Shown here piece by piece: positions 4,501 to 61,760 of a DNA stretch of 64,000 nucleotides. Positions within the stretch are counted from its first letter, which is position 1, and every line of letters begins with the position of its first letter. A program made the translations under genes and the position numbers. The DNA comes from Trichosphaerium sp. ATCC 40318 (taxonomy: Eukaryota; Protista; Tubulinea), in contig JALMLS010000255.1 in assembly GCA_038496445.1 (NCBI GenBank), positions 372,001-436,000 of the forward strand, written 5' to 3'. The notes beneath the pieces are model-generated. The model was not told the DNA's origin. It did not search any database and saw nothing but the letters and a program-made list of their open reading frames with translations.

Positions 4501-4560
4501 ATACCGGCCAGGTCGAGAAAAAAAAGACTGAAAAATAAAAGATATTTAAGTTCTGTTTCT
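1520..4560 (+). repeat. ~3 kb near-identical direct repeat of 44915-47920, containing an F-box-like gene
   Basis: Line-by-line match, e.g. ORFs 1890-2186 and 45278-45574 differ at one residue; 3836-4531 and 47203-47895 are nearly identical. Confidence 0.97.
3482..4531 (+). pseudogene. F-box-like protein, copy A (2 introns; 1-nt frameshift near 3641)
   Basis: N-terminus MLSTLPDELLLFLLSFLD...LAFTCKRLRAVA fits an F-box pattern. Introns are at ~3720-3772 and ~3947-4073. It lacks one nucleotide relative to copy B (aaggtttgctc vs aaagatttgctc). Confidence 0.65.
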
Positions 4561-5074
4561 TTGCTTGTTTTTCAAATTCAAACAGCCACTTCTCTCTTAT
4601 TCTTGGTTGCTTTTATGTTGCCTCCGCACCCTCCACTAATTGCATCTTTTCATCTTGACTTTGTATATACGGTGTCTTAGAATATTCTTTAAAAAACCGT
4701 ACAACGTAAGCAGGTTTTGCCTGCGGATACTTTGATCGCAAGTATTTATTATGACGTCCTGCTAGGCAGGTGCTTCCTTTCCAAAGCGGTAAGTGATCAT
4801 CGGTACGGTGAGCACATAAGTTCGATTAGCCCTCGGCGCCTCGTGGTTATCCGCGTATGTTGATCGTCGTCTTTGCTGACGCAGACGACTGTATGATTGA
4901 AGCATATTCTCTGTAATCTCACCAAATTCGTAGCCTATCTAGCTAGGTTCCTAGGATGAGATCTAGGATGTATAAATATAATGACATTGAGAAGAGTATC
5001 TCTTATCTCGCGTTCAACGTTTAAGTGGTTTTTACGTGCTCCAAACGAAATATATCATGTTGTTTACCTTGTTG

Positions 5075-5243
5075 TCCACTTTGCTTTTTTTACGAGGATT
5101 TTTTTCTTTGGTTGTCTTCCTTGCTGATTTTCTCGCTGGTTTATGTCCTGTCTTACGTGCAGGCGCTTTCTTCTTTGAGCGTGTGGCGCTTTGTCGTTTT
5201 CTTTGCTTCATACTCTGACGGCTCTTCAAAGCTATGCTCCAGG
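5075..5243 (-). pseudogene. Captured, frameshifted fragment of the Lys-rich exon of the H1-VWA gene (42985-43165)
   Basis: Reverse complement aligns with 42985-43165 (gaagagccgtcagag...aaaccagcgagaaaatcagcaaggaagaca...cctcgtaaaaaaag) with small indels. Confidence 0.9.
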
Positions 5244-11600: not shown

Positions 11601-14600
11601 TTCATCTTCTGATTTGTTATCTACTTCTAAGCGTACTTCTCTTGTATCGGATCTATCACGTCCTCGTACAGGCTCGTTTATAGACTAAGTTTAAGCAAAC
11701 GTTAAGATATTACCTAAGAAATACGTGGGCTTACGATAGTATCTTCATCACTAGTGTCCTTTGGCACATTAACTTGTACAGGCTTTTTAAGCTCTGTTGT
11801 TTCGGGCTCTTCTTCAGGTTCGCGTGGTGTCGTTGAAGGCTGTTCCAATTCGACTCTTTGTTCCTTAGGGTCAGCTTCAGGCTCAGTTTCAGGCTCAGTT
11901 TCAGGCTCAGTTTCAGGCTCAGTTTCAGGCTCAGTTTCAGGCTCAGTTTCAGGCTCAGCTTCAGGCTCAGCTTCAGGCTCAGTTTCAGGCTCAGTTTCAG
12001 TCTCAGCTTCAGGCTCTGCTTCAATTTCAATTTCAGGTTGTGGCTTTGATTTGCGTTCCTGTTCTGCGGTATTTTCTATTTCCTCAACCTCTATTTCTGG
12101 TGCTGGCTTATTTTCTTCTGGTGTCGGATCATCAATTTCAAGAGTTTTAGGAGATTTAGGGGTTTTAGGAGTCTTAGGAGATTTAGGCGACTTGGGCTTC
12201 TTATCAGGAGGTGCTTCTTCAATTTGTACATCAACATTCAGCCTTTTTACTGGTAAAGTGTCTATAGTAGCAGGTGTTGGTTCCTTCGCTTGTTTAGCAA
12301 CGTTTACGAGTTGGTCTGGTTCGGATTTCAAAGCTGGAATAGGATCCGCTGCATGTTCTACAACAGGTTCACTCTTTGCAACAGTAGCTCTTTCGATCTC
12401 TGGGGTGTCAGGTACTGATATTACTTCCTTTGGTACAATAATGTCTGGTTTTGGTTGAGGTTCATTTCTGTCAATCACTCCAATGCTTGGGGCAAGATTC
12501 ATTGAAGATGAAGATAGGTATGTGCCAAGAGTATTGTGGTCAATATCTTCAAGTACATAACCTTGTAAAGCTTCAGGAACCTCGTCACCTTCAAAGATAA
12601 CAATCTCTCCATCACGAAGTTCTCCGTTCTCATCATCTTCTTCAGCATCTTTGAGGAGCTGTAAGAACATGTAATCCAAATCGTACTTGTCCCTGTACAA
12701 AAACAACAGTAAGAAAAAAAACATACAAAAACAAAAGGTTGGATGAAAAATAATATGTACCTCATGTACTGAAGCAAGTCTTGAAGTACTCGCGTATTAC
12801 CAGTCACAATATCATGAGGAGTAATTTTAACAATATCTTCAAATGCCTGCTCAGCTAGAAAACGCAATAGAGTCGTTGCATTCTGCATAGAGTGCCATAG
12901 CGTAGTAGGTGTTAAATTGTATCTTCCAACATAACCTTTTGTTACTACCTAAACAAACATAGTGAGTAAATAAACTAAACCCTCCTGTTCCCTGTAAGGG
13001 CACAGTAGTATGAGTATATGATCTATTATGTATACCTCTAGAAGAGAAAGAAGCTTCACACCAGTACGTAAATCACTACCAAGGTTCTTAATACGAAGTG
13101 TTTTATTTCCTGTTTCTAATGTAATATTCGCCCAATCTATCAAATCTTGTTGTTCTGGAGTTAACTCTACCTGTGGGTATCCATAAAAGTTAGTAATTTT
13201 AACTTTGTTTTGTAAGAATAATTTCGTAAACGTACATCTTCTTCAACAGAAATGGAAGCAGTTGCGTTGTATTCACCACTAACAAGAGACTGAACAAATA
13301 GATTTTTTCTCATTTTGTCATCTCTTATTTCAGGACCTTCCCATCCTTCTTGCTTCTTCATGTGACCTGCAAGAACAAAGAAATGATTTAGAACCATATT
13401 CTGGTTTTGTTTCTCGAATAAATCATTGGTTTCAAAAAGAGCGTGAGGCTCCAATCCAAGTTGTTCACAGCCATGAATATAATTTTGGATATTTTCCTAA
13501 ACAGAGGAGCGCGTTAACAACCAAATAAACGCAAAAACAATGCAAAACCAGCGATTTCGAAAAAAAGAAAAAAAAACTGACAGCCAACCTAATGGCGCAC
13601 TATTACGCTTCGACATTAAATGCCGCGTAGCATAACGCATTGGCATTAGTTTGAAGCTATGAAACCCATTTCAAGGGTTGAATTCGATAAAAGTCATAAA
13701 AAAAGACGTACTCTTTGACGAAAGACCATTTTACCCTTGTTAATACTACGTACACTACCAGGACGTAGTATGTTTATCAACTCGCATAGAGCAACTCCCG
13801 ATTTTAAAGAGTCCAGTAAAGGCTCATTAGGGAACTCTTTCTTTATAACAGCTTCAATCCAGTCCTTTGCGTTTTTTTCTTTTACAGGATCGAAAGAAAA
13901 TAATTTCTTTGTTTTAATATCATCAGTAAGCGTAGCAATACGCTCATTCTGTATATGCTCTAAACGAAGAATTAAAGACAAGCAAAAAAAAGCCGTCAAC
14001 GAAAAAAAAAACGTTTAAACGCTTAGAAAGCAATAAACGCACGCTGAACATTGCCGTGTCGTCCCCACAGCCCGTCAGGGTTATCGTGTAAGTTGTAAGT
14101 TGGGCTTTTCGGCGCAGAGAAGTAGTCTCTTGATGGTGATAGCGTCTCCTTGGGCGCCAACTGATCCTTTAGCTTATCGCCGAATTTCGATTGAAGTTTT
14201 TCGAGATAGGCTAGATGAGTAAAAACCTTTAATTAAACGAGTCAGCACGCAATAGTGAAGTGTGTATTTAACGTACGCGCATCATATCGCGTTCTTCAAA
14301 CAAATCAAGAATTTGGAACAAGTTTTCTTCTTTCATGCCTATACGTCTGCATACGTTCAAGTATGTGGTGATGGTCTCCTAAAATATAGCGATCAAAAAC
14401 CTGTTTCACGTTTACATTTCGTTTACCATCTGCTTGAACGGTAGAGTAGATTTTCTCACTTTCGGTATGCTTTTAGGCACAAGCAGGTTCATTAATCTAA
14501 AGTAGCGTTAGAATCAAAACCGTTCATTCGGAAGTAACGCCGGCCCATCCAGAGATACGTACATGCTTAACATAGTACCATCTTTGAGCATTGGAAACAG

Positions 14601-21777: not shown

Positions 21778-21994
21778 GAAGAGAGAACATTTAATTTTTG
21801 GTTCTTCTTTGCGCAATTGTAAATAAATTGATAGCGTGCTTGTGTTGTTGTTTGGGTAGAGTGTATTTATTGATTGTGACGGATCCTATCAGACGTTCCG
21901 TCAAGTATGTCAATCCTGGAAACCGTGTCGCCTCAGTGGCGCATTGTGTTTCGTGGAAGTGTTTGGGCGGCAAATCTTGAAAAAGCCAAAGAAC

Positions 21995-22345
21995 ATGCTG
22001 AATCTCGTAGTGGTGTACACGGATGATATTGATAAAGAACGAGAGCTGTTTTCAGCTGTAGGATTGGAATTTGTCAAAGAAAAGCACGGCAAAGGACCTG
22101 AGCACTTTGCAGCTTCGAAAGAAGGTGTAGTGTTCGAAATCTACCCAACGAGCAAGAACAGACCCGTTACAAATGCAAGATTGGGTTTTGTTGTTGATAA
22201 CCTCGCTAACACCATCCAGACGCTATCAAAACACGACTGCACGCTAGTAACGCAAGGAAATTCAAAATGGGGCAAACGTGCTGTTTTTAAGAATGCCTCT
22301 TGTAAAATCACTTTTGAGCTGCTAGAAAAGCCTCAAACAGTGTAA
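21995..22345 (+). CDS. Intronless glyoxalase/VOC (bleomycin-resistance-like) family protein
   Basis: MLNLVVVYTDDID...FSAVGLEFVKEKHGKGPEHFAA...VFEIYP...RLGFVVDNL...SKWGKRAV is the pattern of small bacterial VOC proteins. Confidence 0.8.
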   Translation: MLNLVVVYTDDIDKERELFSAVGLEFVKEKHGKGPEHFAASKEGVVFEIYPTSKNRPVTNARLGFVVDNLANTIQTLSKHDCTLVTQGNSKWGKRAVFKNASCKITFELLEKPQTV

Positions 22346-24690: not shown

Positions 24691-25441
24691 TGCTGACCAT
24701 AGCCATTTTTGGGTTTTTGTTTGAAAGGCTTACAGGTGACAGGAAGTATAGTTTCCGCGTAAACTTCTGCTTTACAAAAAGTCAGAATTCTCTTCTGATT
24801 TTCAGAAATTATGGCTTTGTACCCTTTATTTTACTTTGTTACGAGTCAGCTTCTATTTTTGTTTGGCTAGTTATAGCCGACTTCAACAACTTGAACGGGT
24901 AACTAGCTATAACCGTTAACACCAACCGACCAGCTGTTTGTCGAAAAAGAAAGGAACAACAAAGTTCCCTTAGCTACGGTCCTTTATTTGACCACTACAA
25001 AGCGTATTTGCTGAATGTAGGGCTATAAAATGACGGTTTTTGGTTTATATGTACAGTAGCGAAAACGCCTAAAACGTTTAATCAACAGCCTTTTTAAAGC
25101 ATGACAAGCCAGTTTCTTGTGTGTAGACAAAAAAGACAAGAGTGAAACTTTCTGCGCAGCTTTGTTTTCGGGTCGTCTAAATATTGGAGAAAGAAGGAAA
25201 CAACACATCTACTCAACTACTTAAAACCATTTAAAACGCCGAAAACAGTCCAAACCAAAAAAGGGAAATCATTAATAAAACTATTTACACCAACTCCGGC
25301 TCACAAAAACTAACCATCAAATAACTCACATGCGCTTCAATTGTACGTTAAAACAGGTGTGGTGAATATATATGGTTTCATAGTTAAGTCACATTCTACG
25401 TTATGAGTTTAAGACTTACCATCATAAACTGCTCTACAACA

Positions 25442-26451
25442 ATGATGCAACACGCAAATAATGCGTTTTTGGACTTGCCAATGCAGGTGCTGTTTTCATT
25501 AGTAGCACTTTTGGAGGTACTTGAGGGGTTTGCCTTATCATGTAAAAAGTTCAAAATGGTGGTTGAGCGCTATAGTACGACCACAACAAACAGTTGCAAA
25601 GATTTGCTCACTAATTTAGAGTCTTTTTCCCGCAATATCAGCATGGACGTGATTGGTTTAGCAGCAATGGCATGGAGCGCAGGTACGCAATTCATACTCA
25701 CACATCAGCTTTTGAAGTTCCTAACTTTTGTAAAGACGCAATCTCGGTGGCAGCCGTGCCGAGGAATAGGTTGTTATACATGGTAGAGAACATGCTGTTT
25801 TCCACCACTACAAAACTTAGTGATTATTGGTTCGTTTGGCTAAACACTCGATGGAGTACGCATAAGGTTCTTTTACGATGCTTTATCCCAAGCGAACGTT
25901 TTACAGGCACGAATCTTTTTGTTTTTTTTAGATTTTCGAATTCTTGTTTTTTTTTTTTTTGAGTAGTTGTGTTCAAACAATCTGAATATTATTTTGCGTA
26001 GGCGGTTTGCTTGAAACTTGTGTATACAAAGCTATGTACAAAGAAGATTGTTTTATAGAGCACGCTCGCTTTTTATCGCTCATGCCGCTCGTTGAAAGCC
26101 ATGGATTCCTTGTTTCATGCTTAGGGAACATGCTTACTATTGGTTCGCTAGTACTCTACAAGATAAATGTAGCCGGCGAGGACCTCTACAACGCCTTGGT
26201 TGAGCTTGACAATCATGTATATGAGCAATCTACTGAGCAATACAAGTACTTTGAGCCTTTTTTTTTTTTATGATGGTAAAACGTTTACGTTGGGAGTTCG
26301 TGTCCTTGCGGATTACCTCCGTGACATCATGATGCTGGATGACTATGAAGCATATGTTTGGGAGAATCGTTACTACCCAAAGGAAATAATTTCAAGAAAA
26401 CAGTTCGAGGCGCAGAAGAGCGCGAAGGCAAACTATAATTATACGATATAG
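25442..26451 (+). CDS. F-box-like protein, copy B (diverged paralogue; 2 introns; apparent frameshift in a T12 run near 26270)
   Basis: AFLDLPMQVLFSLVALLE...FALSCKKFKMVV; same intron positions and C-terminal LVELDNH...WENRYYPKEIISRKQFE as copies A and C. Confidence 0.7.
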
Positions 26452-28859: not shown

Positions 28860-30910
28860 ATGTTTTGATGGTGAAAAAATGGAGACTTCAAAGAGTGGTA
28901 TAATAACACCCAATACAAGCAACAGTATTCTTACCTGGTATGATGAGGATGTACAACTAAAACGACATTGCTATTTTAAGGACGACAAATAAGGAAGGTA
29001 AATGAACAATACAAAGATGGTGAAAAATGTACAAAGATGGTGAAAAAAATGTTATTTCGTTACTTTTATTTATCTACACAAATGGGATTGACATTCTTAA
29101 GAATGGAGATCACTGGAATTGGCACCAAAACAAATGTTTGGTGTGGTTAAGTGATCAGGACACCATCTACTTTGATGGACTGTACTGTTTAAAATAGAGA
29201 AAGTTGCAGTCAATACTTTGACATACCCATGACATTCAAAAGAGTCGTATTGGCTTTGAGGATGTTTACTCACAACAATAATTTAACATTTTCCTTCATT
29301 CAACCGAGCAACCCCCCTCTCCAGAGGCACGGGAAACTCGAAACTTTAGAAGTGATTAAGTTCTAAAGTCCAGCCGCAGTGATTGAAAGAATTCCTACTG
29401 AAAAATACTGAAGCTCTTATATAGTGGCCTGCCTACCAACCCGTTACTCTTTGAAATTACAGGCATGATTTCACAAGCAAGTGAAACCAAGTACTGAATT
29501 GCCCCTTTCCCTAGCATAAGTTAGTTGACAATAAACTTATAATCACGACTTTGAATACCTCAACTAGAATCTGTCTTGCCAAAATCTTGGTACCAACCTA
29601 ACATACCCCCATCCCAAGTTTGCTCCACCTGTGTATTGAACCAGAAATCAAATACCATATCTACTCTCCTATAAAACGTTGTCAGTCATACATTTATGTG
29701 ATTTTGTTGCCCACTGAGGGCTCCAATTACATACCTTTATAATGCCATCCTTCTCTCCCTAATTGATGTACTTGGCTTGGGTGCCTTTCCATCAATTAGT
29801 TCTTGACACATAGGTGTCTATCCCCCACAAGTACTTGGACATGTGCCTTTCCTTGTTGGGTAAAACTTGTTGAGGTGCTGGATGACATGGCACCTCTTAG
29901 GGTACCTGCCAAAGTTATGATGAACTCTCATGACTCGATTAGCATTTCTACACTTCAAATGAGTGTTATAATGATAGAAGAGGACATATGTTCATGCATA
30001 CATAGATAGTTGTCGCCCACTGTGGGCTTCAACTTCATGACTGGAGGTCTCGATTAACATTTCTACGCCTCAAAATGTGCGTTATAATGATAGAAGAGAA
30101 CCCATTCTCAGAGTGGACACAGCATTAAAGCTGTAGTACCACTTACTCAATAACCAATGAGTAGTGTCATTGATGGATGTACTAAGAGACAAGCTAAACT
30201 CGGCCTTTTCTATCCTTCACAAAGTGTTCTGTAGTTACAGATACACAGTTGTATCACCTCAGACAGGAGGTGCTCGAGCCAGTCGATTACCACTGCCTAT
30301 GCCATGTTTTTTACGCATTTTACATAGGTGGCTTATGTGGTAGAAGACCCAACTACAAGGGGTAAAGAGAAGCAACTTCTAGGGGCACACACTACACAAA
30401 ATTATTTGTGTTTGGTATTTTTTTTCTTTTTTTTTTTTTGGTGCCTTGAAGTCTTTCTTCTTTTATGCTATATTAGGCTACACGGTTGTAAGACTGAACC
30501 CATTGAATGAAAATATTGAGTTTTCACAGCACTCGCAAATACTGTTATAACTCTCATAGCTCTCTGTGTACGTGTTGTGTTGAGGTTGTGGGTTTGAACA
30601 AGCGCCAAAACAGCATTGTTGGTTCTTTGTTCCTGCTTTGTGCAGCTTTTTCGTTGTTGAAAGTCGGAGCCCTGATAAATGCCATTGGGTCCTATAACGC
30701 TCTCATACTTGCTTTCACTCTATTTAATTGCGTCCAGCGTATTGTACATAAATAGAAACAAAAAAACCAACCGTTTTTTTCTCGAACTGCCTTTATTTAT
30801 CTCTGTATGGTGTTTACAACTAGGTACACATACTTTTATAAGCGCTATTCGCCATTCTCACAGTTCCTGTCCACGACGAATTTCCACTGACTTCAACCTT
30901 CAAATAAAAA
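28860..30910 (+). repeat. Island module repeated directly at 58965-59642 plus 60177-61535
   Basis: Near-identical text, e.g. 29160-29510 vs 59290-59640 and 30010-30520 vs 60642-61160. Confidence 0.95.
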
Positions 30911-31266
30911 ACAGGCTGAAAAGTAGTAAATAAAACATCGTGACGGTTTTCAACGCACTAAAATACCTAATATAAGGTTTAAGGAATTTTGGAAATGTGC
31001 ATTATCCATATTTGAGTATTTTAATTAGATATTTCAGTGAAATTCAAGCGGAAAAAGTAGTTGTCGTTTAGTTGCACGTTTTGCGAGTCAGGGTAATCTT
31101 TTCAGTAATTTAAATGTAAACCCAGAATGCGGCTAGGTTCTACTGTCGTAAGTAAGGAGCTTCCGCGACAAAGGAGTAAATCCGATTTGCTTTTTACAAA
31201 AACGAGTAACAGGTTATTACTGCAAGAACAAGTGTGCCACTTTGTTGTATTTGTTACAATTATATT

Positions 31267-41180: not shown

Positions 41181-42132
41181 ATATGCGTTATCTCGTGGTC
41201 GAAAATACAGAAAAAAATAGGAATTGTAACATTTATCGCAAACGCGGTCAAGTTCAGTTCTGATTTTTTGCATAATACACCAACATGTCAATGTGCGTAT
41301 TTTCTATTTTTTCAAACAAACTGCGAGGTAAAAGTTGTTCGTTTTGACGTAAAAAATCGACAAAAAAGCCAAAATTTCTGGCATACTACATCGATTTCAA
41401 TGCTGATTCTTTGCACATTGATGTAACTCGTACGGGAGCACGTAAACCTACTTTTTAAAGTACATACAGCGAATGAGGAAAGACAAATGTTTCAATTTCT
41501 GGCTTACCAAATTGACTTTGATGCGCCTTGTCGTGAAAATAAAACTTGAATAGAAAAAATTAGTGGTATTTCAGAAATTGTAAGCAAAACCATTCCAATG
41601 AAACAAACTACAAGCTCTATTTGAAGGCTCATCTTCGTCTGCAACACTAATTTAAGGCGATGGATATTAAGCACAACAGATCGTTTGCTTCTGGGTATGT
41701 TATACAGAAAGTTGGGCGAAAAGTCAAAAAACAAATCTTACAACGCACAGGAACCGGATAAAGAAAGAAATAGGAACAATTCAACGCGGATTGTGATGGA
41801 CCTGTAGCAGAACGCACAGGGATGGCAAGAGTAATGGAGAATGAATTTTGCTTTTGTCTTTGAGATCTGTGACCGACAAGTGCTAGTTTGTTGTACCCGA
41901 TAATGATAAGGTTGTTCAAGGCAGAACAAACATGTATAAAAGGCTATTGCACGAAGCTTAGATTGATAATAAAGGTCTGAATTCAGAGACAACAATATAA
42001 GGCGCATGTTGCGTATATGGCACTGCAATTGGACAGTTCAATACGATTGTCACGTGAGGTTATCTTAAAAACCAGATTTCTTCGAATTCTACAGAATACT
42101 CTTGACTGCCTCACAAACTCGCAATAAACAAC

Positions 42133-44786
42133 ATGAGTGCACCTAGACGCAAACAACCGAACAGAAACAAACGGAAAATCCAACGGGAAGAAACAATCTC
42201 AGTAATACTCACCAAGTCTTCTCGTAAGCCTATTGTACTCGTTCCTGGGTCAACCAAGGCAAAACCGTACCGCGCAATGGTGCTTGAAGCACTTGCAGAG
42301 TTAACTTACAGAAACAAGGTAAAACGCACTCAAATCGCCTAAACTAACCAAACATAGCCTGTAAGCCGACAAGCCATCTCCAAATTTGTATATCAAAACT
42401 ATAAAGTGAGCGACGCTTACAAACGATACGTTAATAGTTGCTTGACGCGGTAAGCATTACATTTTCAATCAATGAAGATTGTTCTGCTCCAAGTAATACA
42501 AACAGGCCTTATTAACGTTATACTGTAGCCTTGTATCTGAAGGTGTGCTGAAGCAAGTTAAATACTCATACAGAATTGCTCAACCTAAAAAAAAGGCAAT
42601 CAAAAAGAAAAAAACGTACGCAAACTTACTGCTATTTTAGCCGTTAACCGTCAACATAACGGCTCAAGAAATTAAACTAAAATTACGCCAACAATGACTT
42701 TACGCTTGAGCGAGTACTTATTTAATATCTAGTGTAAGAAAGACAGCGAAACGAACGACTACGCGAAAAGCCACAAAAAAGACTGGAAGAAAAGTACGTT
42801 TGGTTTTTTTTTAACGAGAGCAAGGTTAGCTTTAAAATAAGAACTTTTACCGTGATTGTTCACCTTTATGTTTTTCTTTGGTACTTCACTCTTTAGCCGT
42901 CCATTTCCTCTAGAAGGTAACTAATCTTGCCATATAGCGCAAGCGGGACGAAGAAGAATCAGAAGATAGTGACATTGAAGAAGATTCCTTGGAGGATAGC
43001 TCTGAAGAGCCGTCAGAGGCGTATGAACCAAAGAAAACGACAAAGCGCGCCACGCGCTCCAAGAAGAAAGCGCCTGTGCGCAAGACAGCACGTAAACCAG
43101 CGAGAAAATCAGCAAGGAAGACAGCACCAAAGAAAAAAACTCCTCGTAAAAAAAGAAAAGTGACAATAACAAGAGAAGGCACAGAGGTACGTCGATTTGT
43201 ATCATACGTTTTTGTTTAATGCTTCTCAGGTCTTAGAAAACGAGAAAAAGCGTATAACTAGACTTACACGTGTTCCTTCAACGTCACTTGAAACAACAAA
43301 ACAAAGAGCTAAAAATGTTGACACCAAGCTTCAGGCACGTGTTCAATTGAACGTAGGTTGAAATCTAACGTACTTTCTCAGATTATTTTTGCGTTTGACA
43401 CGACTGGAAGTATGTACGATGTTCTTGAGACAGTCAAGACAAAGATTGGAGAAATTGCAAAGTCTCTTTTGGATGACATTGGCAGCATTGAGTTTGGTTT
43501 GATCGCATTTGCTGGTACGTACCAGACCTTTGTCTTTTTCAACTATTTTTACTAACCGATTGCGTTAGACTACGATCAATTAAAACCTGAGCCTTATTTG
43601 ATAAAACACTTGGACTTCTCTGATGATGTTGATGCTATTACCGCTTGGGTTCATGGCGTTGAAGGAACTTATGGTGCTGATTGGCCGGAAGCCTATGAGG
43701 TGAGTCACCTTTAATACCTAGTTCAGTACATAAACGTCTTACTGCTTGGTTAAGGTCGCATTGAAGAAAGTGCACGACTTTGGGTGGAAGGATAAATACA
43801 GTAAAGCCATGATAGTATTTGGCGACGCCATTCCTCACAATCTCGATGATTACAAGTATGGTTACTTTCTTGTTAATATCTAGAAACACCAATCCTTACG
43901 TACTATTTCAGAACTCTTGATTATTTGAAAGATGTTGAGAATATTGATTGGGAAGAAGAACTTGAAAAAATTGCAGAATCACAGATTAAAATATATGCAG
44001 TGCAAGTGCGTACCTGATCTATCAAAGACCAAATAGACCAAATAATTTTACTCACGATTCATTTAAGTGTAACTCTACAAATGAACAGACAACACAATTT
44101 TTTACAAAACTAGCAGAAGAGACAGGAGGCGAGAGATCTGAGGTAATTTTGGTTTCCTTTTTTTTCGTAAGTTTCTCTGACTTGATTCTCACAACAGCTC
44201 AACGATGATACTGTAGTCGATACAATCAAAGGTTTATGTTATCGTGAAGCAACTGAAGTACAATATCAACACCACGCTGTTGAGATTGAGAAGCGCATGC
44301 GTCTTGTAGAGCGCCAAGATTCCGCACAATTCATGCTTCCAGTTGAACTTAATCGAGAAACAATTGATGTACGTTTACCACAGCTACTCGACGCCTTCTT
44401 ACTCACCTTGTAAGCTCACTGATGATGAAATATTAACAATACATAATGTAATACATGAACCTGGAACTGACTATGTCACTCTTGGAGATACAAAGCATGC
44501 TATACGCTACGGTCAAGGTAAGTTTGGTTTGTGGGGTTTTTCCGATCCCTAATTCTGTTATTAAGCTGGCTGTCGGTTTGTGCACTATGGAGGGCTGTGT
44601 TTTATAGAACAAAATAAAGACAAGGATAGCAAATTTGCTCGCATGGCTATCAAAGGCAAATCAATCACTTGGATTTGCAGGCATGTTTTTGTTTTTCCTC
44701 AACCTTTTTTGTTCATGAAATTAATGTACTGGTTTAGAAAAGGCAAATGGGGATTAATTATTGACAAAAATATTGTACGCAAATGA
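42133..44786 (+). CDS. Linker-histone H1 (H15) domain + Lys-rich tail + VWA domain + small C-terminal domain fusion protein (multi-exon)
   Basis: PYRAMVLEALAELTYRNKPVSRQAISKFVYQNYKVSDAYKRYVNSCLTRLVSEGVLKQVKYSYRI (H15-like) splices in frame to KKTTKRATRSKKKAPVRKTARK and then IIFAFDTTGSM...GLIAFADY...GADWPEAYEVAL...IVFGDAIPH (VWA, DxTGS MIDAS). Confidence 0.82.
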
Positions 44787-44914
44787 TTAAGGTAAAACAA
44801 TACGTCCTTAAATAAATTCAATTTTCCTCATGTCATGTACCTTCATGTGTTATTTGCCTTTTTTCAGATTTGTGTCAAACGTACGTTGGTTAAGCATGTA
44901 CCAATGTACAGTTA

Positions 44915-47900
44915 ATGAACAACTGGGATAAGCGTGTTACCAATTTCTTCTCACCGCTTTTTTTGTTTTCTTGTTTTGGACGCCTAAAGCACGTATACAA
45001 TTGTTTTGCGCGTATAATTCTCTCTTTAGAGTGTTTTGGGCCTTGGTTGGCAAAATTATCTGTTTTTAGCATTAAAAGCTTCTTGTCCTCAGTCCAGGTG
45101 TGGTAACGGCATATATGGTATGATTAGTACGTTCTACAAGCGTTAGACATCACCAGAGCGTGTTCAAAGCAGATATTGAACAACGTTCCTGTTTAGGCAA
45201 TACTACTTAAAAGTAAAACTCGGCATTTTGAAAGTAATTTATTGTGCGCACACAGTAGTTATACACTTTCATACTTTTCACACTTGATATATGGCGTTAA
45301 AAAAAGCGTTTACGCCTAGGTCAAATGCGTAAATAGCTCTAGGAAGATTTTTGTAAGTAGTCCTAATTAGGAAGTATATTCTGAGCCTACCTACTTTTAA
45401 TGCTGTAGGTGTTATATCTAGTAGAATACAATTTGTTGCATACATTAGTATGGATGAAAACATGTGTAGTTCTTCAGACTCCAAATTCTGGTGAACAGTC
45501 GAGTTCAGAAGAAAATGGAATTTACAAATTACGCAAGCCTGATGGCTGCACAGACTTGAAACCCTTCTTAGCATGTGTATAGTAGCTTTAATATGAGTTA
45601 GAGTCGTTTAATAGGTTGTACACGCTTGCCCTAAATCGGTATTGGGGAACAATTGGCTGCAATATTAGCACAGCAAACCAACGTTTTACACGTTTTCCGA
45701 GTGATAATCGTCGTTTAAAGGTACATTGAACATACGCGTTCTAGTACCATAAACTTTGTTTTAGCTCATAGCGCATAAATTTAATTGCAAGAACTATTAT
45801 GGCTTTACAGGCTTGAATCATCTGTTTATTCTCAATGAAGCTCGTTAGTGCTTTTTTAGTTTAGCCTTAAAAAAACACGTAAAAAAGTAAGTAGGTTATT
45901 TCACACTTGGAAGTTAACAATAGAGCCATTCGTTGTAGAACTATATTTACACATAATAAAGCATTGGTGAGAGGTGTCAGCCACTTACAAAAATAGAGCA
46001 CTAGATGATTCTGAATCAAAAGCAAGATAATTAGTAACTTTTCAAATTCGGCCTTTTCGGACAGCAGTGTAAATGACAGTGAATGCTCTATTTACGCGCA
46101 AAAAGTGTACTACAATCATAGTTGAGGTTTTTTAAGTCCCAGTTAAACAAACATGTTTCCTGAGACTTCAAAAGCGATCAAATACCCTGTTTACGCGTAA
46201 ACAGTTTAAAGTAAGCATCCTATCGATACTAATGCCAAAAAAGTTCAAGCGCTTATGCACTTTCATACAATTGACAGGAAGTACAATTTCTGAGCGTAAA
46301 ATTCAGATCTATGGCAACAACTTTTGTTTTGTAGAGTGGCTACGCAAAACGTCATTCTCTTCTGGTTTTCAGAAATTATGTCTTTGTACCCTTTTATACT
46401 TTGTTTACGTATCAGCTTCTATTTTGTTTAGCCAGTTACTTTTGAAAAGTATGCTTCGGCGAACTTTGCATTTGTGAAAAAACCATCGTTGGTTAAGAGT
46501 CTTTTAATCACTTGTGTGTACCATGGTTTAAATCATCAAGATCTTTTTGCTGTGCAGCTTTGTTTCGGGCATCTAAAAGTTGGGAGAAAGAGGGAACCAA
46601 AAAGCACAGCTACGCAACAACTTAAAACTGTTTAGCACGCTGAAAACAGTCCACAAAGCCAAAAAAGGGAAATCAGAATGCGTATTAAAAAAAACTATTT
46701 ACTACGCAAACTCCGGACTCATAAAAAACTCAAATGTGCTTCAATTGTACATTAAAGCCATTGCGATGAATGCACGGTCTCATAGTGTTAAGTCACTTTC
46801 CATATTGATTTTAACGACTTACCATCATAAACCGTTTAATCTGCAAGTGATGGAACAACACGGGAGTGACATGTTTTCGACACTGCCAGACGAGTTGCTG
46901 TTCTTCCTGCTTTCGTTTTTAGACATCATTGGGTCTCTTGCCTTTACGTGCAAGAGGCTAAGAGCCGTGGCCAGGTGCTACAGTACGACCAGAACGAACA
47001 GTTGCAAGGTTTGCTCACTAATTTAGACCGTTCCATCACTATGAGAAGCGGTGTCCTTAATTACCCAGTACTACACTGGGCTGTAAGTACGTGACACATA
47101 CCCACAAATCGTTTTTGAAGCTCCTAACTTTTTGTAAAGACGTTTTACACATGGCAGAGGTTAGCCAAGATAACCTCCTATGCATGTTGGAGAACATGTT
47201 CTGTGCCACAACGGCACAACCCAAAGATTGCTGGTTTGTTTGGCAAAGCACTCGCTTCATTTCTCGGAAGCTCATTCATTTGCGGTGCTTTATCCCAGGT
47301 GAACATTTCCCAGGCACGACTCTTTGTTTGTTTTGTTTTTTTTTTTGATTTTCGAAAACCGATTTTTACGATCGTTTTTTTTTTTTTTTGTTTTTTTTTT
47401 TTGAGTAGTTGTATTCAAGGAATAATATTTTGCGTAGGCAATCGGTATTCAATCGCTACGTACATTAAAATGTACAACGAAAGGTGTAAAATAGAGCGCG
47501 CCCGCGCGTTGTCACTCATGTATCTGGTTGAAAGACAAGGATTCCTTGTTACATCAAGCGTAATGAACATGTGCACTATTGGCCCAATAGTATTGTACAG
47601 GACGAATGTGGTCCTTGGAGACCTATATGAGGCGTTAGTAGAGCTCGATAACCACATGTTTGAGCAATCATACAATTGCTTTGAGGGTTTTTTTTTTAGA
47701 GTTGGTGAAACGTACACGTTGGGCGCTCTTGTACATGCTGATTACATCGTTGCAATCATGGACATGAATTATTATCAAGAATATCTATGGGAAAACCGCC
47801 GATACCCATCTGAGATAGTTTCAAGACGTGAATTTGAGGAGACACTTTTGGCAAAATTTAAAAGATACCGGCCAGGTCGAGAAAAAAAAGACTGAAAAAT

Positions 47901-47920
47901 AAAAGATTTAAGTTCTGTTT
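44915..47920 (+). repeat. ~3 kb near-identical direct repeat of 1520-4560
   Basis: Direct sequence comparison; begins ~130 bp after the H1-VWA stop codon. Confidence 0.97.
46850..47895 (+). pseudogene. F-box-like protein, copy C (same frameshift as copy A)
   Basis: MFSTLPDELLFFLLSFLD; same exon layout and the same aaggtttgctc 1-nt deletion as copy A. Confidence 0.65.
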
Positions 47921-48848
47921 CGTTGGTTTTTTTCTTTGAGTAGTTTCCTATTACACATAGCAAATGCTCTCTAGTCTCATTGAATTTAAGGGCTTTAGAA
48001 TTTGTTGCCTGTTCTTGTCAACAACTTTTCAACCTTGATTACTTCTACAAATTGTGTTGTTCGCTATTTAATGGTTACAGACCAAACAGCTACATGAGAC
48101 AGCCACAAGTGTTCACATTCAGGCTCAACTTTCTATCTCCTCACGGAGCATTAGTCAACCCCAGGAGTCCACATTGCCCTTCACCAATTAGCCTTAGCGC
48201 TTACAGTATGATATTAACCACATGTATAAGCTGCCATAATTTGTGAGAAATGGGGCATTCAAGTCCAACAAATTTGTAGTGAATACGCTATTTACGCAAG
48301 TATTGAAAAGCATGCAAAGTTGTGGACGAGATTTTTAAGCTCTAGATAAAGCAAATGTGTTTCATGTAACTTCAAAAGTGAAGATACGCAATATTGTCGA
48401 TCTAGTCATCAACGTTTGGTATGAGGTCTTTATCTCAAATTGCTCCCATCATTTCTTTTTGGTTGCTATATCTCAAACACTACTATCCGTCACTATGCAT
48501 GTCAAACACTTCCGGCTATCACAGCACATCCGAAATTGTTGTTCCGCTATTAGCTAATTATTGCACTAACTAAGTTCTTCTTCTCTTGCTTCTGCCACTA
48601 CTCATACAACATCCATACACTCATCAACGCTTGTTGCGACAGGTATCATGTATCCATGGGCATCTTCAGGGAATTTTGTGTTAAAAGAGATCTTCAAGAG
48701 TTGCAACAAGGCGAATGCCGCGAACAATTGAATTACATAGATGAAAAGTTGAGCTTTGGTACAATAAGATAGTTTTAATGTTACTTGATAATATGCTTGG
48801 CTGTTTACAAAGTTATTTCATTATCACCAAATAAGTTTAACCCAGTCA

Positions 48849-49420
48849 TTACATGAAGTCATCTGTGACTTGTACGTCAATAACCTCTCCATCAACATAC
48901 CTACAAATTATATATGTACGCCCATTTTCATGCCACTGTATTGATTTTCCGTTGGCACACCACCGGTGTACTGTAACTGACACTTCATTTTACCATTTTG
49001 ATACCATTGCTGGTAGTCTCCTTGCTTCTTTCCATCAATGCACATGTATTTTTCTTCAATATCTCCACTAGCATACCATTTCTCAAAAAATCCTCTCATT
49101 TTCCCATTCTTATACCCACAACGTATCTTGAGCTTTCCGTCATTATACCACTGTCTAAACCTTCCATTCAGCTCACCTTTGATGTACATACACTCTGTTT
49201 TAAGCTGTCCGTTATAGTGCCACTCCTCAAACAAACCATTGATGGTACAGTTAATGTAGAAACATCTCTTTCGGAGCCTACCATCTTCATGCCACTCCAT
49301 AGCCTTTCCCTTGAGTGTATTATACTTCACCTCTATTTGTCCGTTTGCGTGCCATCTCATTATGGCTGTACACGTGTTTTCTCCGTTACAGACGTTTGGG
49401 TAAGACTTGGTATGACTCAT
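48849..49420 (-). pseudogene. Intronless MORN-variant (YwqK-like) repeat protein with one frameshift near 48955
   Basis: ~24-aa repeats G-x4-W[HY]xNG-x7-Y. After a frameshift the repeat resumes (QWHENGRTYIICRYVDG) to TAA at 48849. This could be a sequencing error. Confidence 0.75.
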
Positions 49421-49624: not shown

Positions 49625-51247
49625 CTAAGTTGAGTCCCTTTGGTTAGTTGATAGAAGAGTAGTAGTTAGTATCAGAACTCTAACATCACCATATTTAAAC
49701 CCGTTCTTGTAAACACACAGTTCTTTCATTTGTCTGTTTGCATGCCATTCTTTACACTCTCCATTCTTCTTTCCGTTGGTCATTTTATAGTGTACTTTTA
49801 GGTCACCATAGTTATCCCATGTTTTATAGTCACCTTCTTTCTTATCATCTTTGTAGAAGCATCTCTCTATAACAGTTCCAAACTTAGAGTGGCAAACCTT
49901 CTCGCCATTCTTCTTGCCATCATCGTACATACACGTTTCCTCGATTGTTCCGTCCTCATACCACTTAGTAAACACTCCATTTGGTTTACCATCGACCCAT
50001 GTGCTCTTTTCTTTAACTGTTCCGTCGTTGTACCACTGCGTAACCTCACCATTCTTTTCACCGTTTGTGTACAGAATACTTTCTTCAATTTGTCCATTAT
50101 CGTACCACGTGCGATACTCACCTTCTAGTTTGCAACCAAAACTTGTATAGCTATATTGTAGCAGTCCATTCTCATACCATGTATTACGCAGTCCATGTAT
50201 AACACCGTTCTTGTACGTACTTTTTTCTTTGATTTGGCCGTTCTCATACCACTCATTGTACTCGCCATTTCTGTCACAATCGTTATAGTTACAATCTATT
50301 TGCAGACTTCCATCCGCATACCACTTTGTAAACACTCCATTTGGTTTGCCATCGACCCACGTGCTCTTTTCTTTAACTACTCCATCCTTGTACCACTTTG
50401 TACATGCACCATCCTTTTTGCCTTCCTTGTAAAAGCACCGTTTTATGAGTTGACCGCCTCCGTCATACCAGCTAATGTATCTACCGTTTTTCTTACCATC
50501 CTTGTAAAAAGAATGTTCCTTGTTTAGGCCGTTTTTAAACCGCTCTCTGTACTCTCCATTTTTTTCTCCATTAACGAAACTACAATCAAGTTTGCAATGT
50601 CCATTGGCATACCACTTTTGAGACTTTCCATTTTGTTTACCATCAGCCCACACACTGTATTCTTCAGGTTTTCCATTCTCAAACCATTTCTTACGCTCTC
50701 CATATAATATTCCGTTGATGCGCGTGTAGTCAACTTGAGGTTGTCCATCACTATACCACTTCTTACATATTCCGTTTATCTTGCCTTCTTTGTAAACAGA
50801 TTGCTCTTTGGTTAGTCCGTTCTCATACCACTCAAAGCATTCTCCATTCTTTTTATTATCCTTGTAAATAAGATGTGCGGCAAGTTGTCCATTCTCATGC
50901 CACTTTTTGTATTCACCATTCTTCTTGTTTTTTATAAAATAACAGTGTACATTCAGCTGTCCGTTCTCATGCCATTGTTTAAAAACGCCGTTCTTCTCTC
51001 CATCAATCAATGGATATTTAGAATGTACGTTGCCGCTGTTGTACCAAAACGTCCACATTCCGTTCTTATCAAGATAGTTATTGTAGTGTGTGCTGATTGC
51101 AGCTCGTTTAGATAGCGTATGAAACTTCTTAAAAGTTTCCTCATTGAATGAACATAAGTAGCGTTGGATATCTCTTGGCAGGTCTAATAACGCAGTAGGA
51201 GGCGCATTGACAATATTTTGGTACTTCCCAGGCTTGTTTGTACTCAT
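49625..51247 (-). CDS. Intronless protein with an N-terminal F-box-like segment and about 19 MORN-variant (YwqK-like) repeats, 540 aa
   Basis: LLDLPRDIQRYLCSF...FHTLSKR, then tandem KNGEYKKWHENGQL-type repeats; KEKSTWVDGKPNGVFTKWY occurs twice, 360 nt apart. Confidence 0.88.
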   Translation of the reverse strand: MSTNKPGKYQNIVNAPPTALLDLPRDIQRYLCSFNEETFKKFHTLSKRAAISTHYNNYLDKNGMWTFWYNSGNVHSKYPLIDGEKNGVFKQWHENGQLNVHCYFIKNKKNGEYKKWHENGQLAAHLIYKDNKKNGECFEWYENGLTKEQSVYKEGKINGICKKWYSDGQPQVDYTRINGILYGERKKWFENGKPEEYSVWADGKQNGKSQKWYANGHCKLDCSFVNGEKNGEYRERFKNGLNKEHSFYKDGKKNGRYISWYDGGGQLIKRCFYKEGKKDGACTKWYKDGVVKEKSTWVDGKPNGVFTKWYADGSLQIDCNYNDCDRNGEYNEWYENGQIKEKSTYKNGVIHGLRNTWYENGLLQYSYTSFGCKLEGEYRTWYDNGQIEESILYTNGEKNGEVTQWYNDGTVKEKSTWVDGKPNGVFTKWYEDGTIEETCMYDDGKKNGEKVCHSKFGTVIERCFYKDDKKEGDYKTWDNYGDLKVHYKMTNGKKNGECKEWHANRQMKELCVYKNGFKYGDVRVLILTTTLLSTNQRDST

Positions 51248-58849: not shown

Positions 58850-61760
58850 TGATCGGTGAAAAGAAGTTTAATGACAAAAGTGGGATAATCAAAGAGCTGT
58901 GTACTTACACAGAAGCAAGATAAAAGTAATATGAGAGATGTGGTAAATCCCAAACTAGAGTATTGATGGTGACAAAATGGAGACTACAAAGAGTGGTGTA
59001 ATAACACCCAATACAAGCAACAGAACAGTGTTTGTGTAAGGATGGTAAAAAAACCAGCAAGTATTCTTACCTGGTATGATGAGGATGTACAACTAAAACG
59101 ACAGTGCTATTTTTTAAGGATGACAAAAAGGAAGGTAAATGAACAATACAAAGGTGGTGTAAAAAATGTTATTTCTTTACTTTTATTTATCTACGCAAAT
59201 GGGATTGACATTCTTAAGAATGGAGATCACTGAGGCTTGACACCTGGAATTGGCACCAAAACAAATGTTTGGTGTGGTTAAGTGATCAAGACACCATCTA
59301 CTTTGATGGACTGTACTGTTTAAAATAGAGAAAGTTGCAGTCAATACTTTGACATACCCATGACATTCAAAAGAGTCGTATTGGCTTTGAGGATGTTTAC
59401 TCACAACAATATTTAACATTTTCCTTCATTCAACCGAGCAACCCCCCTCTCCAGAGGCACGGGAAACTCGAAACTTTAGAAGTGATTAAGTTCTAAAGTC
59501 CAGCCGCAGTGATTGAAAGAATTCCTACTGAAAAATACTGAAGCTCTTATATAGTGGCCTGCCTACCAACCCGTTACTCTTTGAAATTACAGGCATGATT
59601 TCACAAGCAAGTGAAACCAAGTACTGAATTGCCCCTTTCCCCTACACTTGCACAATAACATTTTAGATAACAATTGAATACACTACTCAGTGCCAACACA
59701 CTTTGGGTAATACGTTCGGTATGATACTTGGGAGTAACCCTGTTCTCTGTCAAACGTAACCGTATATATATGGTGCCCCAACTTTCATTGTGGTTGGATG
59801 TGAGTATATTCAGTGCCATCCCTCCAAGGTACTTAAGAGTATTGTTCCCTTTAGAGGTAAAATGAGAGAATAAACACATACAGCACAATAACATTTTAGA
59901 TAACAATTGAATACACTACTCAGTGCCGACACACTGTGGGTAATACGTTCGGTATGATACTTGGGGGTAACCCTGTTCTCTGTCAAACGTAACCGTATAT
60001 ATATGGTGCCCCAACTTTCGTTGTGGTCGGATGTGTAGTATATTCAGTGCCATCCCTCCAGGTACTTAAGAGTATTGTTCCCTTTGGAGGTAAAATGTAT
60101 TGAATGTGTTTATTCTCTGCAACATACAAGGACTGAGCCCTTGTACATTGCTGTGCATGTCAATTCCTAAGGTGTAAGTTAGTTTCCGATAAACTTATAA
60201 TCACGACTTTGAATACCTCAACTAGAATCTGTCTTGCCAAAACCTTGGTACCAACCTAAACATACCCCCTTATCCCAAGTTTGCTCCACCACACCATATC
60301 TACTTTCCTATAAAACATTGGTCAGTCATACATTTATGTGATTTTGTTGCCCACTGAGGGCTTCAATTACATACCTTTATAATGCCACCCTTCTCTCCCT
60401 AATTGATGTACTTGGCTTGGGTACCTTTCCATCAATTAATTCTTGAGACACATCGATGTCTATCCCCCACAAGTACTTGGACATGTGCCTTTCCTTGTTG
60501 GGTAAAACTTGTTGAGCTGCTGGATGACATGGCACCTCTTAGGGTACCTGCCAAAGTTATGAACCTGTGACTCGATTAGCATTTCTACACTTCAAATGAG
60601 TGTTATAATGATAGAAGAGGATAGATGGTCACACATAGATAGTTGTCGCCCACTGTGGGCTTCAACTTCATGACTGGAGGTCTCGATTAACATTTCTACG
60701 CCTCAAAATGTGCGTTATAATGATAGAAGAGAACCCATTCTCAGAGTGGACACAGCATTAAAGCTGCAGTACCACTCACTCAACAACCAATGAGTAGTGT
60801 CATTGATGGATGTACTAAGAGACAAGCTAAACTTGCCCTTTTCTATCCTTCACAAAGTGTTCTGTAGTTACAGAGACACTATTGTATCACCTCAGACAGG
60901 AGGTGCTTTGAGCCAGTCGATTACCACTGCCTATGCCATGTTTTTTACGCATTTTACATAGGTGGCTTATGTGGTAGAAGACCCAACTACAAGGGGTAAA
61001 GAGAAGCAACTTCTAGGGGCACACACTACACAAAATAATTTGTGTTTGGTATTTTTTTCTTTTTTTTTTTTTGTGCCTTGAAGTCTTTCTTCTTTTATGC
61101 TATATTAGGCTACACGGTTGTAAGACTGAACCTATTGAATGAAAATATCGAGTTTTCACGGCACCTATAATACCATTGCAACTCTCGCAGCTCTCTTCTT
61201 ACACGTTGTGCGTTGAGGTTGTGGTGTTGAACAAAACACTCAAAACAGTATTATTAGTTCGTTGTTCCTGTGCTTTGTGCGCCTCTTCGTTGTTGAAAGT
61301 CCAAATAAATACCAATGGTCTAAAACGCGCTCATACTTACATTCATTGTATTTAATGGCGTCCAGCGTATTGTACATAAATAGAAACAAAAAACCAACCG
61401 TTTTTTTCTCGAACTGCCTTTATTTATCTCTGTATGGCGTTTACAACTATTTGTGCATGGTTTTGGAAGCGCCATTCGCCATTATCACTGTTCCTGTGCA
61501 AGAAGAAGTTCAATTGACCACCCTCAATTTCAAAAAAAAACCAGATTACATCTCGTTTCTTGTTCTTGATAATGGCAAGTTTGGCTTTGTTTGGAGAATA
61601 CGAAGTGTGCTTCAAATAAGCTTTCTAAACGACATCTCTGGCTACCGCTGGTACCTTCTAGTTCCTTTCGAACACTTTATCCACATATAAGTATCTACCA
61701 CATCGCATTCTATTGCTTTCAAGGAGGAGAGCAATGGAAATAAGTAAGCACAGATTGTCC
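58850..61760 (+). repeat. Island D: decayed MORN fragment plus modules shared with islands A (inverted) and B (direct)
   Basis: Matches 1-860 (reverse complement) and 28860-30910; ORF 59042-59233 mirrors ORF 625-831. Confidence 0.9.
59651..60098 (+). repeat. ~233-bp tandem duplication within island D
   Basis: cacaataacattttagataacaattgaatacac starts at both 59651 and 59884; both units run to gaggtaaaatg. Confidence 0.95.

Follow-up and report, generated by a model that had tools for sequence, protein, structure and literature searches.

A predicted gene of Trichosphaerium sp. joining a linker histone H1 module to a MIDAS-bearing VWA domain and a candidate new C-terminal domain

Linker histones are usually viewed as stand-alone architectural proteins, and a locus in Trichosphaerium sp. 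ATCC 40318 raises the question of whether a whole histone H1 may also form the front part of a larger protein. The locus lies at 42133-44786 of a stretch of 64,000 nt (contig JALMLS010000255.1, positions 372,001 to 436,000, forward strand), which is referred to here as the window and whose own numbering is used throughout. An earlier note, made from the letters of this DNA, had proposed that in-frame splicing joins an H15-like winged-helix segment, an H1-type tail interrupted by an acidic block, a VWA domain with a metal ion-dependent adhesion site (MIDAS) and a small terminal domain. According to our analysis, the locus is probably one gene for one protein of about 589 residues, a chromatin-tethered, metal-dependent docking protein made of an H1 module, a MIDAS-bearing VWA domain and a C-terminal domain.

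An independent gene model, built from the DNA only, gave one plus-strand gene of 15 exons with the same span as in the earlier note (42133-44786) and a coding sequence of 1770 nt, which corresponds to 589 amino acids. Translation starts at the ATG at 42133, the first ATG of the open frame, and ends at the TGA at 44784-44786. The 14 introns are 29-144 nt long, including 13 of the GT-AG type and one of the GC-AG type; a CTNAC-like branch point is present 8-15 nt upstream of the AG in nearly all of them, the splice phases are consistent, and the frame of 590 codons (stop codon counted) is intact. In the product, an H1-type winged helix is followed by a tail rich in Lys, Arg and Thr that holds an acidic block, then by a VWA domain and finally by an 88-aa C-terminal domain. 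Every element that had been named was thus recovered in the independently rebuilt gene, and the gene architecture is confirmed far beyond chance. The GC content of the window is about 38%, and the gene region has no long open reading frames (ORFs), just short open segments between GT...AG boundaries; as had been remarked, the ORF track misses the architecture because the exons are short. A human origin was rejected in view of this GC content, the intron lengths and the branch points, which are of a fungal or amoebal type. A TATAAA at 41935-41940 (+), about 200 nt 5' of the ATG and by pattern count the sole one in 41700-42140, is a candidate TATA box. At the other end, an AATAAA at 44811-44816 (+), 25 nt 3' of the stop codon, is a candidate poly(A) signal, while the only other AATAAA inside the gene falls within coding exon 14.

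The first three exons, like all those described below, lie on the plus strand and encode an H1-like head. Exon 1 (42133-42318) carries the start codon, a basic N-terminal arm (aa 1-44) and H15 helix 1; exon 2 (42358-42449) carries helices 2 and 3; exon 3 (42529-42615), whose splice phases fit, carries a short wing (GVLKQVK...YRIA) and the onset of the basic tail. The H15-like segment (aa 45-112) was scanned against Pfam exon by exon. The end of exon 1 (42244-42318, the last 25 residues) matched positions 2-19 of the Linker_histone profile with 12.7 bits (expect value, E, 0.15), this being the sole family listed, and exon 2 matched positions 21-51 of 74 with 21.2 bits (E 3.4e-4). These two matches are collinear and together score above the gathering cut-off of 22.4, a value set for the whole domain, but neither reaches it alone. 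Because adjoining exons match adjoining parts of one profile and the sum lies above the cut-off, the matches are taken as good evidence, gathered piece by piece, for an H15 winged helix. A phmmer search of the PDB with the three H15 exon pieces returned no match, and the wing of exon 3 presumably resembles the GH1/GH5 wing.

Exon 4 (42733-42793), for which other acceptors lead into stop codons, encodes a Lys/Arg/Thr-rich tail, and exon 5 (42938-43186) encodes the acidic Ser/Asp/Glu block followed by a second basic stretch rich in K, R, T, A and P. By composition, the tail (aa 113-225, 113 residues) contains 26.5% Lys and 13.3% Arg, with a net charge of +27 and one TPRK, which lies in the second basic stretch; it is interrupted by the acidic block (aa 145-167), which appears CK2-site-like. 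All three parts of the H1 layout, a basic arm, a winged helix and a Lys-rich tail, are therefore encoded, more than an H15 domain alone, and both the winged-helix segment and the acidic-block-bearing tail of the earlier note were borne out. This layout, together with Pfam matches spanning helices 1-3, is shared with linker histones H1/H5 (PF00538); unlike them, the fusion protein adds 360 residues with two globular domains, its tail holds an acidic block, its wing is short, and its gene has introns and a poly(A) signal. H15 is a mobile domain, which in SHPRH, KAT6A/KAT6B, HP1BP3 and the plant proteins SMH and GH1-HMGA likewise directs a larger protein to chromatin or DNA, whereas a whole H1 including its tail is present here. 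To our knowledge, none of these proteins pairs H15 with VWA. An inverted 173-nt copy of exon 5, 88% identical, with its frame broken and no other exon adjoining, is found at 5069-5241 (-); it looks like a relic of local rearrangement beside one copy of a 3-kb repeat of the window.

Exon 6 (43230-43352), located inside a 63-codon open frame, encodes the linker 5' of VWA strand 1 and is less certain. The VWA domain follows (aa 264-484). Exon 7 (43382-43514) carries strand 1 and the MIDAS loop D272-x-T274-x-S276 (43397-43411), and was recognized by phmmer and, as a single exon, by Pfam VWA_4 (E 4e-4). The MIDAS residue Thr344 (43667-43669) and Asp348, both in TYGADWPEAYE, are encoded by exon 8 (43569-43699), and MIDAS Asp378 (43824-43826) in FGDAIPH by exon 9 (43755-43855). 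Exon 10 (43912-44005; WEEELEKI...IYAVQ), exon 11 (44068-44142; FF..LAEETGG) and exon 12 (44198-44368) complete the domain, the last encoding the final VWA helix with the family signature GLCYRE, followed by a helical linker; exons 8, 9, 11 and 12 were placed by family alignment.

When the spliced model was compared with 129 proteins of a VWA_4-like family (Pfam PF25106/PF00092), its VWA matched 121 of them by phmmer with E values of 1e-42 to 1e-36. The alignment runs unbroken over exons 7-12 (six exon junctions), which validates their splice sites. All five MIDAS positions (D272, T274, S276, T344 and D378) are kept at the conserved columns of the family, as are the motifs DTTGS, GADWPEA and GDAIPH, from which the MIDAS-bearing VWA had originally been recognized. 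The CYRE helix is present as well, while the W..D..Y..W hairpin of the family is absent and the 88-aa domain stands in its place. An AlphaFold model of one family member reached a predicted local distance difference test score (pLDDT) of 87.9, and Foldseek matched it to integrin beta-I domains, the TFIIH p34 VWA (4wfq) and the CMG2 VWA; a PDB profile search found no solved structure related in sequence to the family.

A relative from a second organism bears on the arrangement downstream of the winged helix. A second metagenome scan, with the FDTTGSMY octamer among its seed patterns, yielded 80 loci, one of which (L086) is a metatranscriptome contig of 1256 nt with 51% GC. L086 is derived from an mRNA of another eukaryote, because it lacks introns, its reading frame is already open at the first base, and a poly(A) end comes right after the stop codon. 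In one frame, it encodes an SPKK-type basic tail, a linker, a VWA domain 40.6% identical to that of the window protein and a C-terminal domain that shares 47.7% identity with its counterpart over 88 aa (tblastn E 8e-25). It confirms exon junctions 12/13 and 13/14 and the GC-AG junction 14/15, the last being spelled in L086 as ITWICKKGNWGLVID; IYAVQ|C, which crosses the junction after exon 10, is also kept, and L086 joins the family in supporting exon 12. Two alternative 3' ends, a GT donor at 44685 and retention of intron 14, were rejected, since L086 supports the GC-AG junction. Judged from these sequences, the order of tail, VWA and C-terminal domain is conserved in a second organism.

In a FastTree tree, L086 is sister to the window protein (support 0.90), and the next clade consists of two BRCT+WWE+VWA proteins (P0009 and P0011) plus P0102. 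In the latter (435 aa, ENA), the VWA and hairpin are of the usual form, and an SPKK-rich basic tail and a poly-Asp/Glu block lie C-terminal to them; a segment resembling a histone tail has thus been joined to this VWA clade a second time, independently. Owing to these BRCT+WWE+VWA and SPKK-tailed neighbours, part of the family around the window protein looks nuclear by analogy.

The C-terminal domain is encoded by exon 13 (44415-44517), which carries its first part, exon 14 (44566-44680), which carries its core (GCRFV...FIEQNK...ITWIC) and ends in the GC donor, and exon 15 (44738-44786), which carries its end and the stop codon. Exons 13 and 15 were placed by alignment to L086, exon 15 also by splice phases, and over exon 14 the identity to L086 is 62%; the small terminal domain that had been noticed in the same frame is thus supported by an independent transcript. 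It is unrelated to the ordinary tail of the family (hhalign probability 1.6%), and neither phmmer nor hhalign matched it to the VWA family tails. L086 served as a stand-in for this domain in structure and profile searches. The domain had no sequence match in Pfam, PHROGs or the PDB when searched with L086 (for Pfam, also with the exon pieces); no relatives were found in the first metagenome scan, in a word search with a 73-aa ORF, or in motif scans of viral and prokaryotic genome contigs, and tblastn against plasmids and phages gave chance-level matches only. AlphaFold predicted one helix and four strands, then a second helix and three strands, with a best pLDDT of 82.8, but the score spans 53 to 83 across the five models, which rest on an alignment of two organisms only. 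Foldseek found no match in the PDB (best E 0.31) and one marginal match in BFVD, an uncharacterised phage protein (E 8e-3, template modelling score 0.53). The check by AlphaFold and Foldseek suggested in the earlier note therefore gave an alpha/beta model for the stand-in, without a convincing fold match, and the modelled domain is a candidate new fold family.

The VWA family came to light when the 44 aa of exon 7 were searched exhaustively by phmmer, which gave only ten proteins; a word search seeded with one of these then gave 343 members. Domain partners were read from the 120 matches listed among these members and from 164 fetched loci. The hosts include bacteria, Amoebozoa (Physarum, Pelomyxa, dictyostelids and Planoprotostelium), many invertebrates, and also phages and giant viruses, and the family motifs are FDTTGSMY, GDYCD, GGGDxPEAYE, IGDxxPH, VYGVQ, TGG and CYRE. 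Among the matches listed, the N-terminal partners of the VWA are ubiquitin-like domains (the commonest), Ras-like GTPases, BRCT+WWE, PARP catalytic domains and CCCH zinc fingers, and in some bacterial members the VWA is N-terminal to a WGR domain. Neither the 120 matches listed nor the 164 fetched loci contain a Linker_histone partner, and no description of an H15-VWA protein was found in the literature, in agreement with the earlier note, to whose author no described H1-VWA fusion was known. Since the N-terminal module of the family varies widely, the H1 is one more address module in a recurring pattern and not an isolated oddity. With the family, the window protein shares this variable N-terminal address, a VWA that aligns as a whole (E about 1e-42), the FDTTGSMY loop, T..D.PEAYE, GD..PH, the (I/V)Y(A/G)VQ strand, TGG and the CYRE helix; it differs in its linker histone address, in diverged HGDYCD and GGGD motifs, and in the 88-aa domain that replaces the Trp/Tyr hairpin. 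What is new here is the H1 as address module and the new C-terminal domain, both within an existing uncharacterised VWA family.

The family is also common on viral contigs. IMG/VR contains 158 VWA relatives, mostly ORFs of 350-390 aa on contigs of 100-530 kb (L005-L084), and two copies from giant-virus metagenome-assembled genomes are SWIM+RING+VWA proteins (L022:3398-5137 and L026:3431-5116; 562-580 aa). No conserved operon, including a defence operon, was seen around the family members in the bacterial contexts. One further locus, L001, is an ordinary VWA-only member. On another contig (L002; JGI 3300041075, 7866 nt), a bacterial-type VWA member lies amid 16 co-directional small ORFs without a Pfam match, which suggests a segment of a phage or prophage. 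On the metagenome contig L097 (8-3235), an ORF of 1076 aa has the VWA motif at residue 746, hence a large N-terminal region.

Several known proteins offer partial parallels. Dictyostelium VwkA (PMC2827801) likewise has an intracellular VWA N-terminal to another module, which is an alpha-kinase domain; the window protein has no such domain, since neither its C-terminal exons nor the homologous region of L086 gave a Pfam match, and among the 120 family matches listed no Alpha_kinase domain was found. The earlier note likened the VWA subtype of the window protein to that of VwkA, which is a lead. A mollusc gene also carries the VwkA label (PMC9283884). PARP4/vPARP (BRCT-PARP-VIT-VWA; PMC2964712) resembles the family in using the VWA as a docking unit in an ADP-ribose-linked assembly, the family itself having BRCT+WWE and PARP members. 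In TFIIH p34/p44, Ku and Rpn10, the VWA serves as a nuclear docking unit, and the p34 VWA was among the best fold matches noted above. However, the PDB profile search showed no sequence-level relationship to PARP4/vPARP or to the nuclear VWA subunits, and the flanking domains differ.

In the proposed mechanism, the H1 module would bring the protein to linker DNA or close to the dyad of the nucleosome, in the manner of H1, while the MIDAS of the VWA, which is of the cytoplasmic/nuclear type, would hold Mg2+ or Mn2+, whose coordination would be completed by an Asp or Glu of a partner protein. Docking at the MIDAS would recruit the partner to chromatin or retain it there, and the 88-aa alpha/beta domain would give partner specificity or regulation. 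Binding to DNA or nucleosomes, metal binding, which protein is the partner and a role in the nucleus are all points that we infer. By analogy, the modules of the sister proteins (ubiquitin, RING, PARP, WWE and BRCT) might point to ubiquitin or ADP-ribose signalling, but this is only a lead.

Several observations weigh against one gene for one chromatin-tethered docking protein. At this locus, the fusion is a prediction from genomic DNA; because L086 lacks its 5' end, the link between H15 and VWA is visible in this window only, and within the reach of short exon queries about 15 billion predicted proteins yielded no relative that has the full architecture. The H15 wing (exon 3), scored piecewise like the rest of the domain, is by itself below the Pfam reporting threshold, and intron 6 is only 29 nt long. 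In the VWA, the near-invariant HGDYCD reads FADYDQ with only D-Y kept (L086 has HGDYRD), GGGD reads YGAD, and the branch is very long (1.8 substitutions per site, where the median is 0.15). Since HGDYCD and part of GGGD are lost, ligand or metal binding may be altered; the long branch itself fits relaxed constraint or fast adaptive change alike. The weakest part of the gene model is exon 6 with its tiny introns of 43 and 29 nt, and the frame would be kept if the exon were skipped. This weak part speaks for a rival reading with two products instead of one obligate fusion: a stand-alone H1 (exons 1-5 with intron 5 retained), or two adjacent genes misjoined by the model. Read-through of intron 5 meets an in-frame stop after 10 codons (TAA, 43217-43219), and VWA-only family members with their own start occur elsewhere (P0005 and L001). 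However, the exon chain has no in-frame ATG between the H1 part and the VWA; the only Met residues before the MIDAS motif are residues 1 and 49, and a separate VWA gene was rejected because the next Met, residue 277, falls inside the MIDAS loop, leaving no start codon at hand for such a protein. Pattern counts also gave no AATAAA between the two halves, and in L086 the basic tail and the VWA are on one mRNA. Exon 6 itself is made plausible by L086, in which, as in members of the VWA family, the same place is taken by a linker that is similar in length and contains a helix. Two separate products are thus unlikely, while an H1-only isoform may exist beside the fusion.

The surroundings of the gene might point to another origin, that of a young chimera from local duplication and exon shuffling, which would be decaying or without a maintained function. 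Recent duplications crowd the neighbourhood, including the 3-kb repeat (96.5% identity) that begins 165 nt past the stop codon and the inverted, frame-broken copy of exon 5; the VWA branch is very long with family motifs lost, and a close orthologue was not found. An intact frame of 590 codons argues against decay, as do 28 intact splice sites despite the substitutions on the VWA branch (about 1.8 per site), and neither the CYRE helix nor any of the five MIDAS positions has been lost. The arrangement of tail, VWA and C-terminal domain is old and under selection, because it is shared with L086 at only 40-48% identity, and we regard a decaying chimera as very improbable. A role in host-virus conflict has also to be considered, in which the H1-like module would coat DNA, possibly viral DNA, while the VWA and the C-terminal domain would recruit ubiquitin or ADP-ribose machinery or, in a variant, act as a decoy for viral RING-VWA proteins. 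The abundance of the family on viral contigs, the SWIM+RING+VWA copies of giant viruses, the partner modules typical of signalling and conflict systems (ubiquitin, RING, PARP, WWE and WGR), a fast evolution that fits an arms race, and the phage origin of the lone marginal C-terminal fold match are all consistent with such a role, but these points are circumstantial. Neither the H1 part nor the C-terminal domain was found on any viral or prokaryotic locus among the loci and contigs scanned, and the bacterial contexts lack a conserved defence operon; this role, including its decoy variant, is accordingly given a low probability. The single-gene docking protein remains the preferred reading.

A broader picture, which we consider improbable, would combine these elements. 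The window protein and L086 would belong to a small eukaryotic lineage in which a whole H1 delivers a VWA and a new alpha/beta domain, and the clade with BRCT+WWE, SPKK and H1 modules would form a chromatin branch, guarding or marking DNA, of a module family whose other users are giant viruses (RING-VWA) and jumbo phages. In that case, the MIDAS would be the site at which ubiquitin or ADP-ribose machinery is recruited, in a setting of host-virus interaction or DNA damage. Returning to the single-gene docking protein, a whole H1, globular domain and tail, would act here as the address label of a larger docking protein. With this locus, a large intracellular VWA family that has gone unstudied also comes into view; its members occur in bacteria, phages, giant viruses, amoebae and many invertebrates, and its exchangeable modules (ubiquitin, RING, PARP, WWE, BRCT, WGR, Ras-like GTPase and H1) suggest a common ligand or activity delivered to different cellular places. 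The finding changes no major question, and the function proposed is one deduced from sequence.

The window around the gene is rich in segmental duplication. The two copies of the 3-kb repeat, at 1566-4571 and 44951-47933, are 96.5% identical, and a third, diverged copy lies at 25149-26410 (about 67% identity). Within the copies are F-box-like ORFs (46580-47023: Pfam F-box-like, E 1.6e-4) and a 230-aa ORF without a family match. Further dispersed or inverted repeats of 82-89% identity pair 1-856 with 59766-58900, 28862-30914 with 58960-61544, and 123-705 with 29513-28924. No tRNA or Rfam matches were found in the window.

Other ORFs of the window include two intronless ones with MORN_2 (YwqK-like) repeats at 48908-49420 (-) and 49625-51247 (-), whose best relatives are bacterial, including Chlamydiae, at no more than 39% identity; they are candidates for horizontal transfer and might be a sign of an amoeba-like host. 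A long ORF at 11717-12796 (-), to which no family is assigned, contains a perfect acidic repeat, (PETE/PEAE)n, and SPK(T/S)PK repeats. Finally, an intronless glyoxalase/VOC-like ORF with a weak Pfam Glyoxalase_4 match (E 3.5e-3) is located at 21944-22342 (+).

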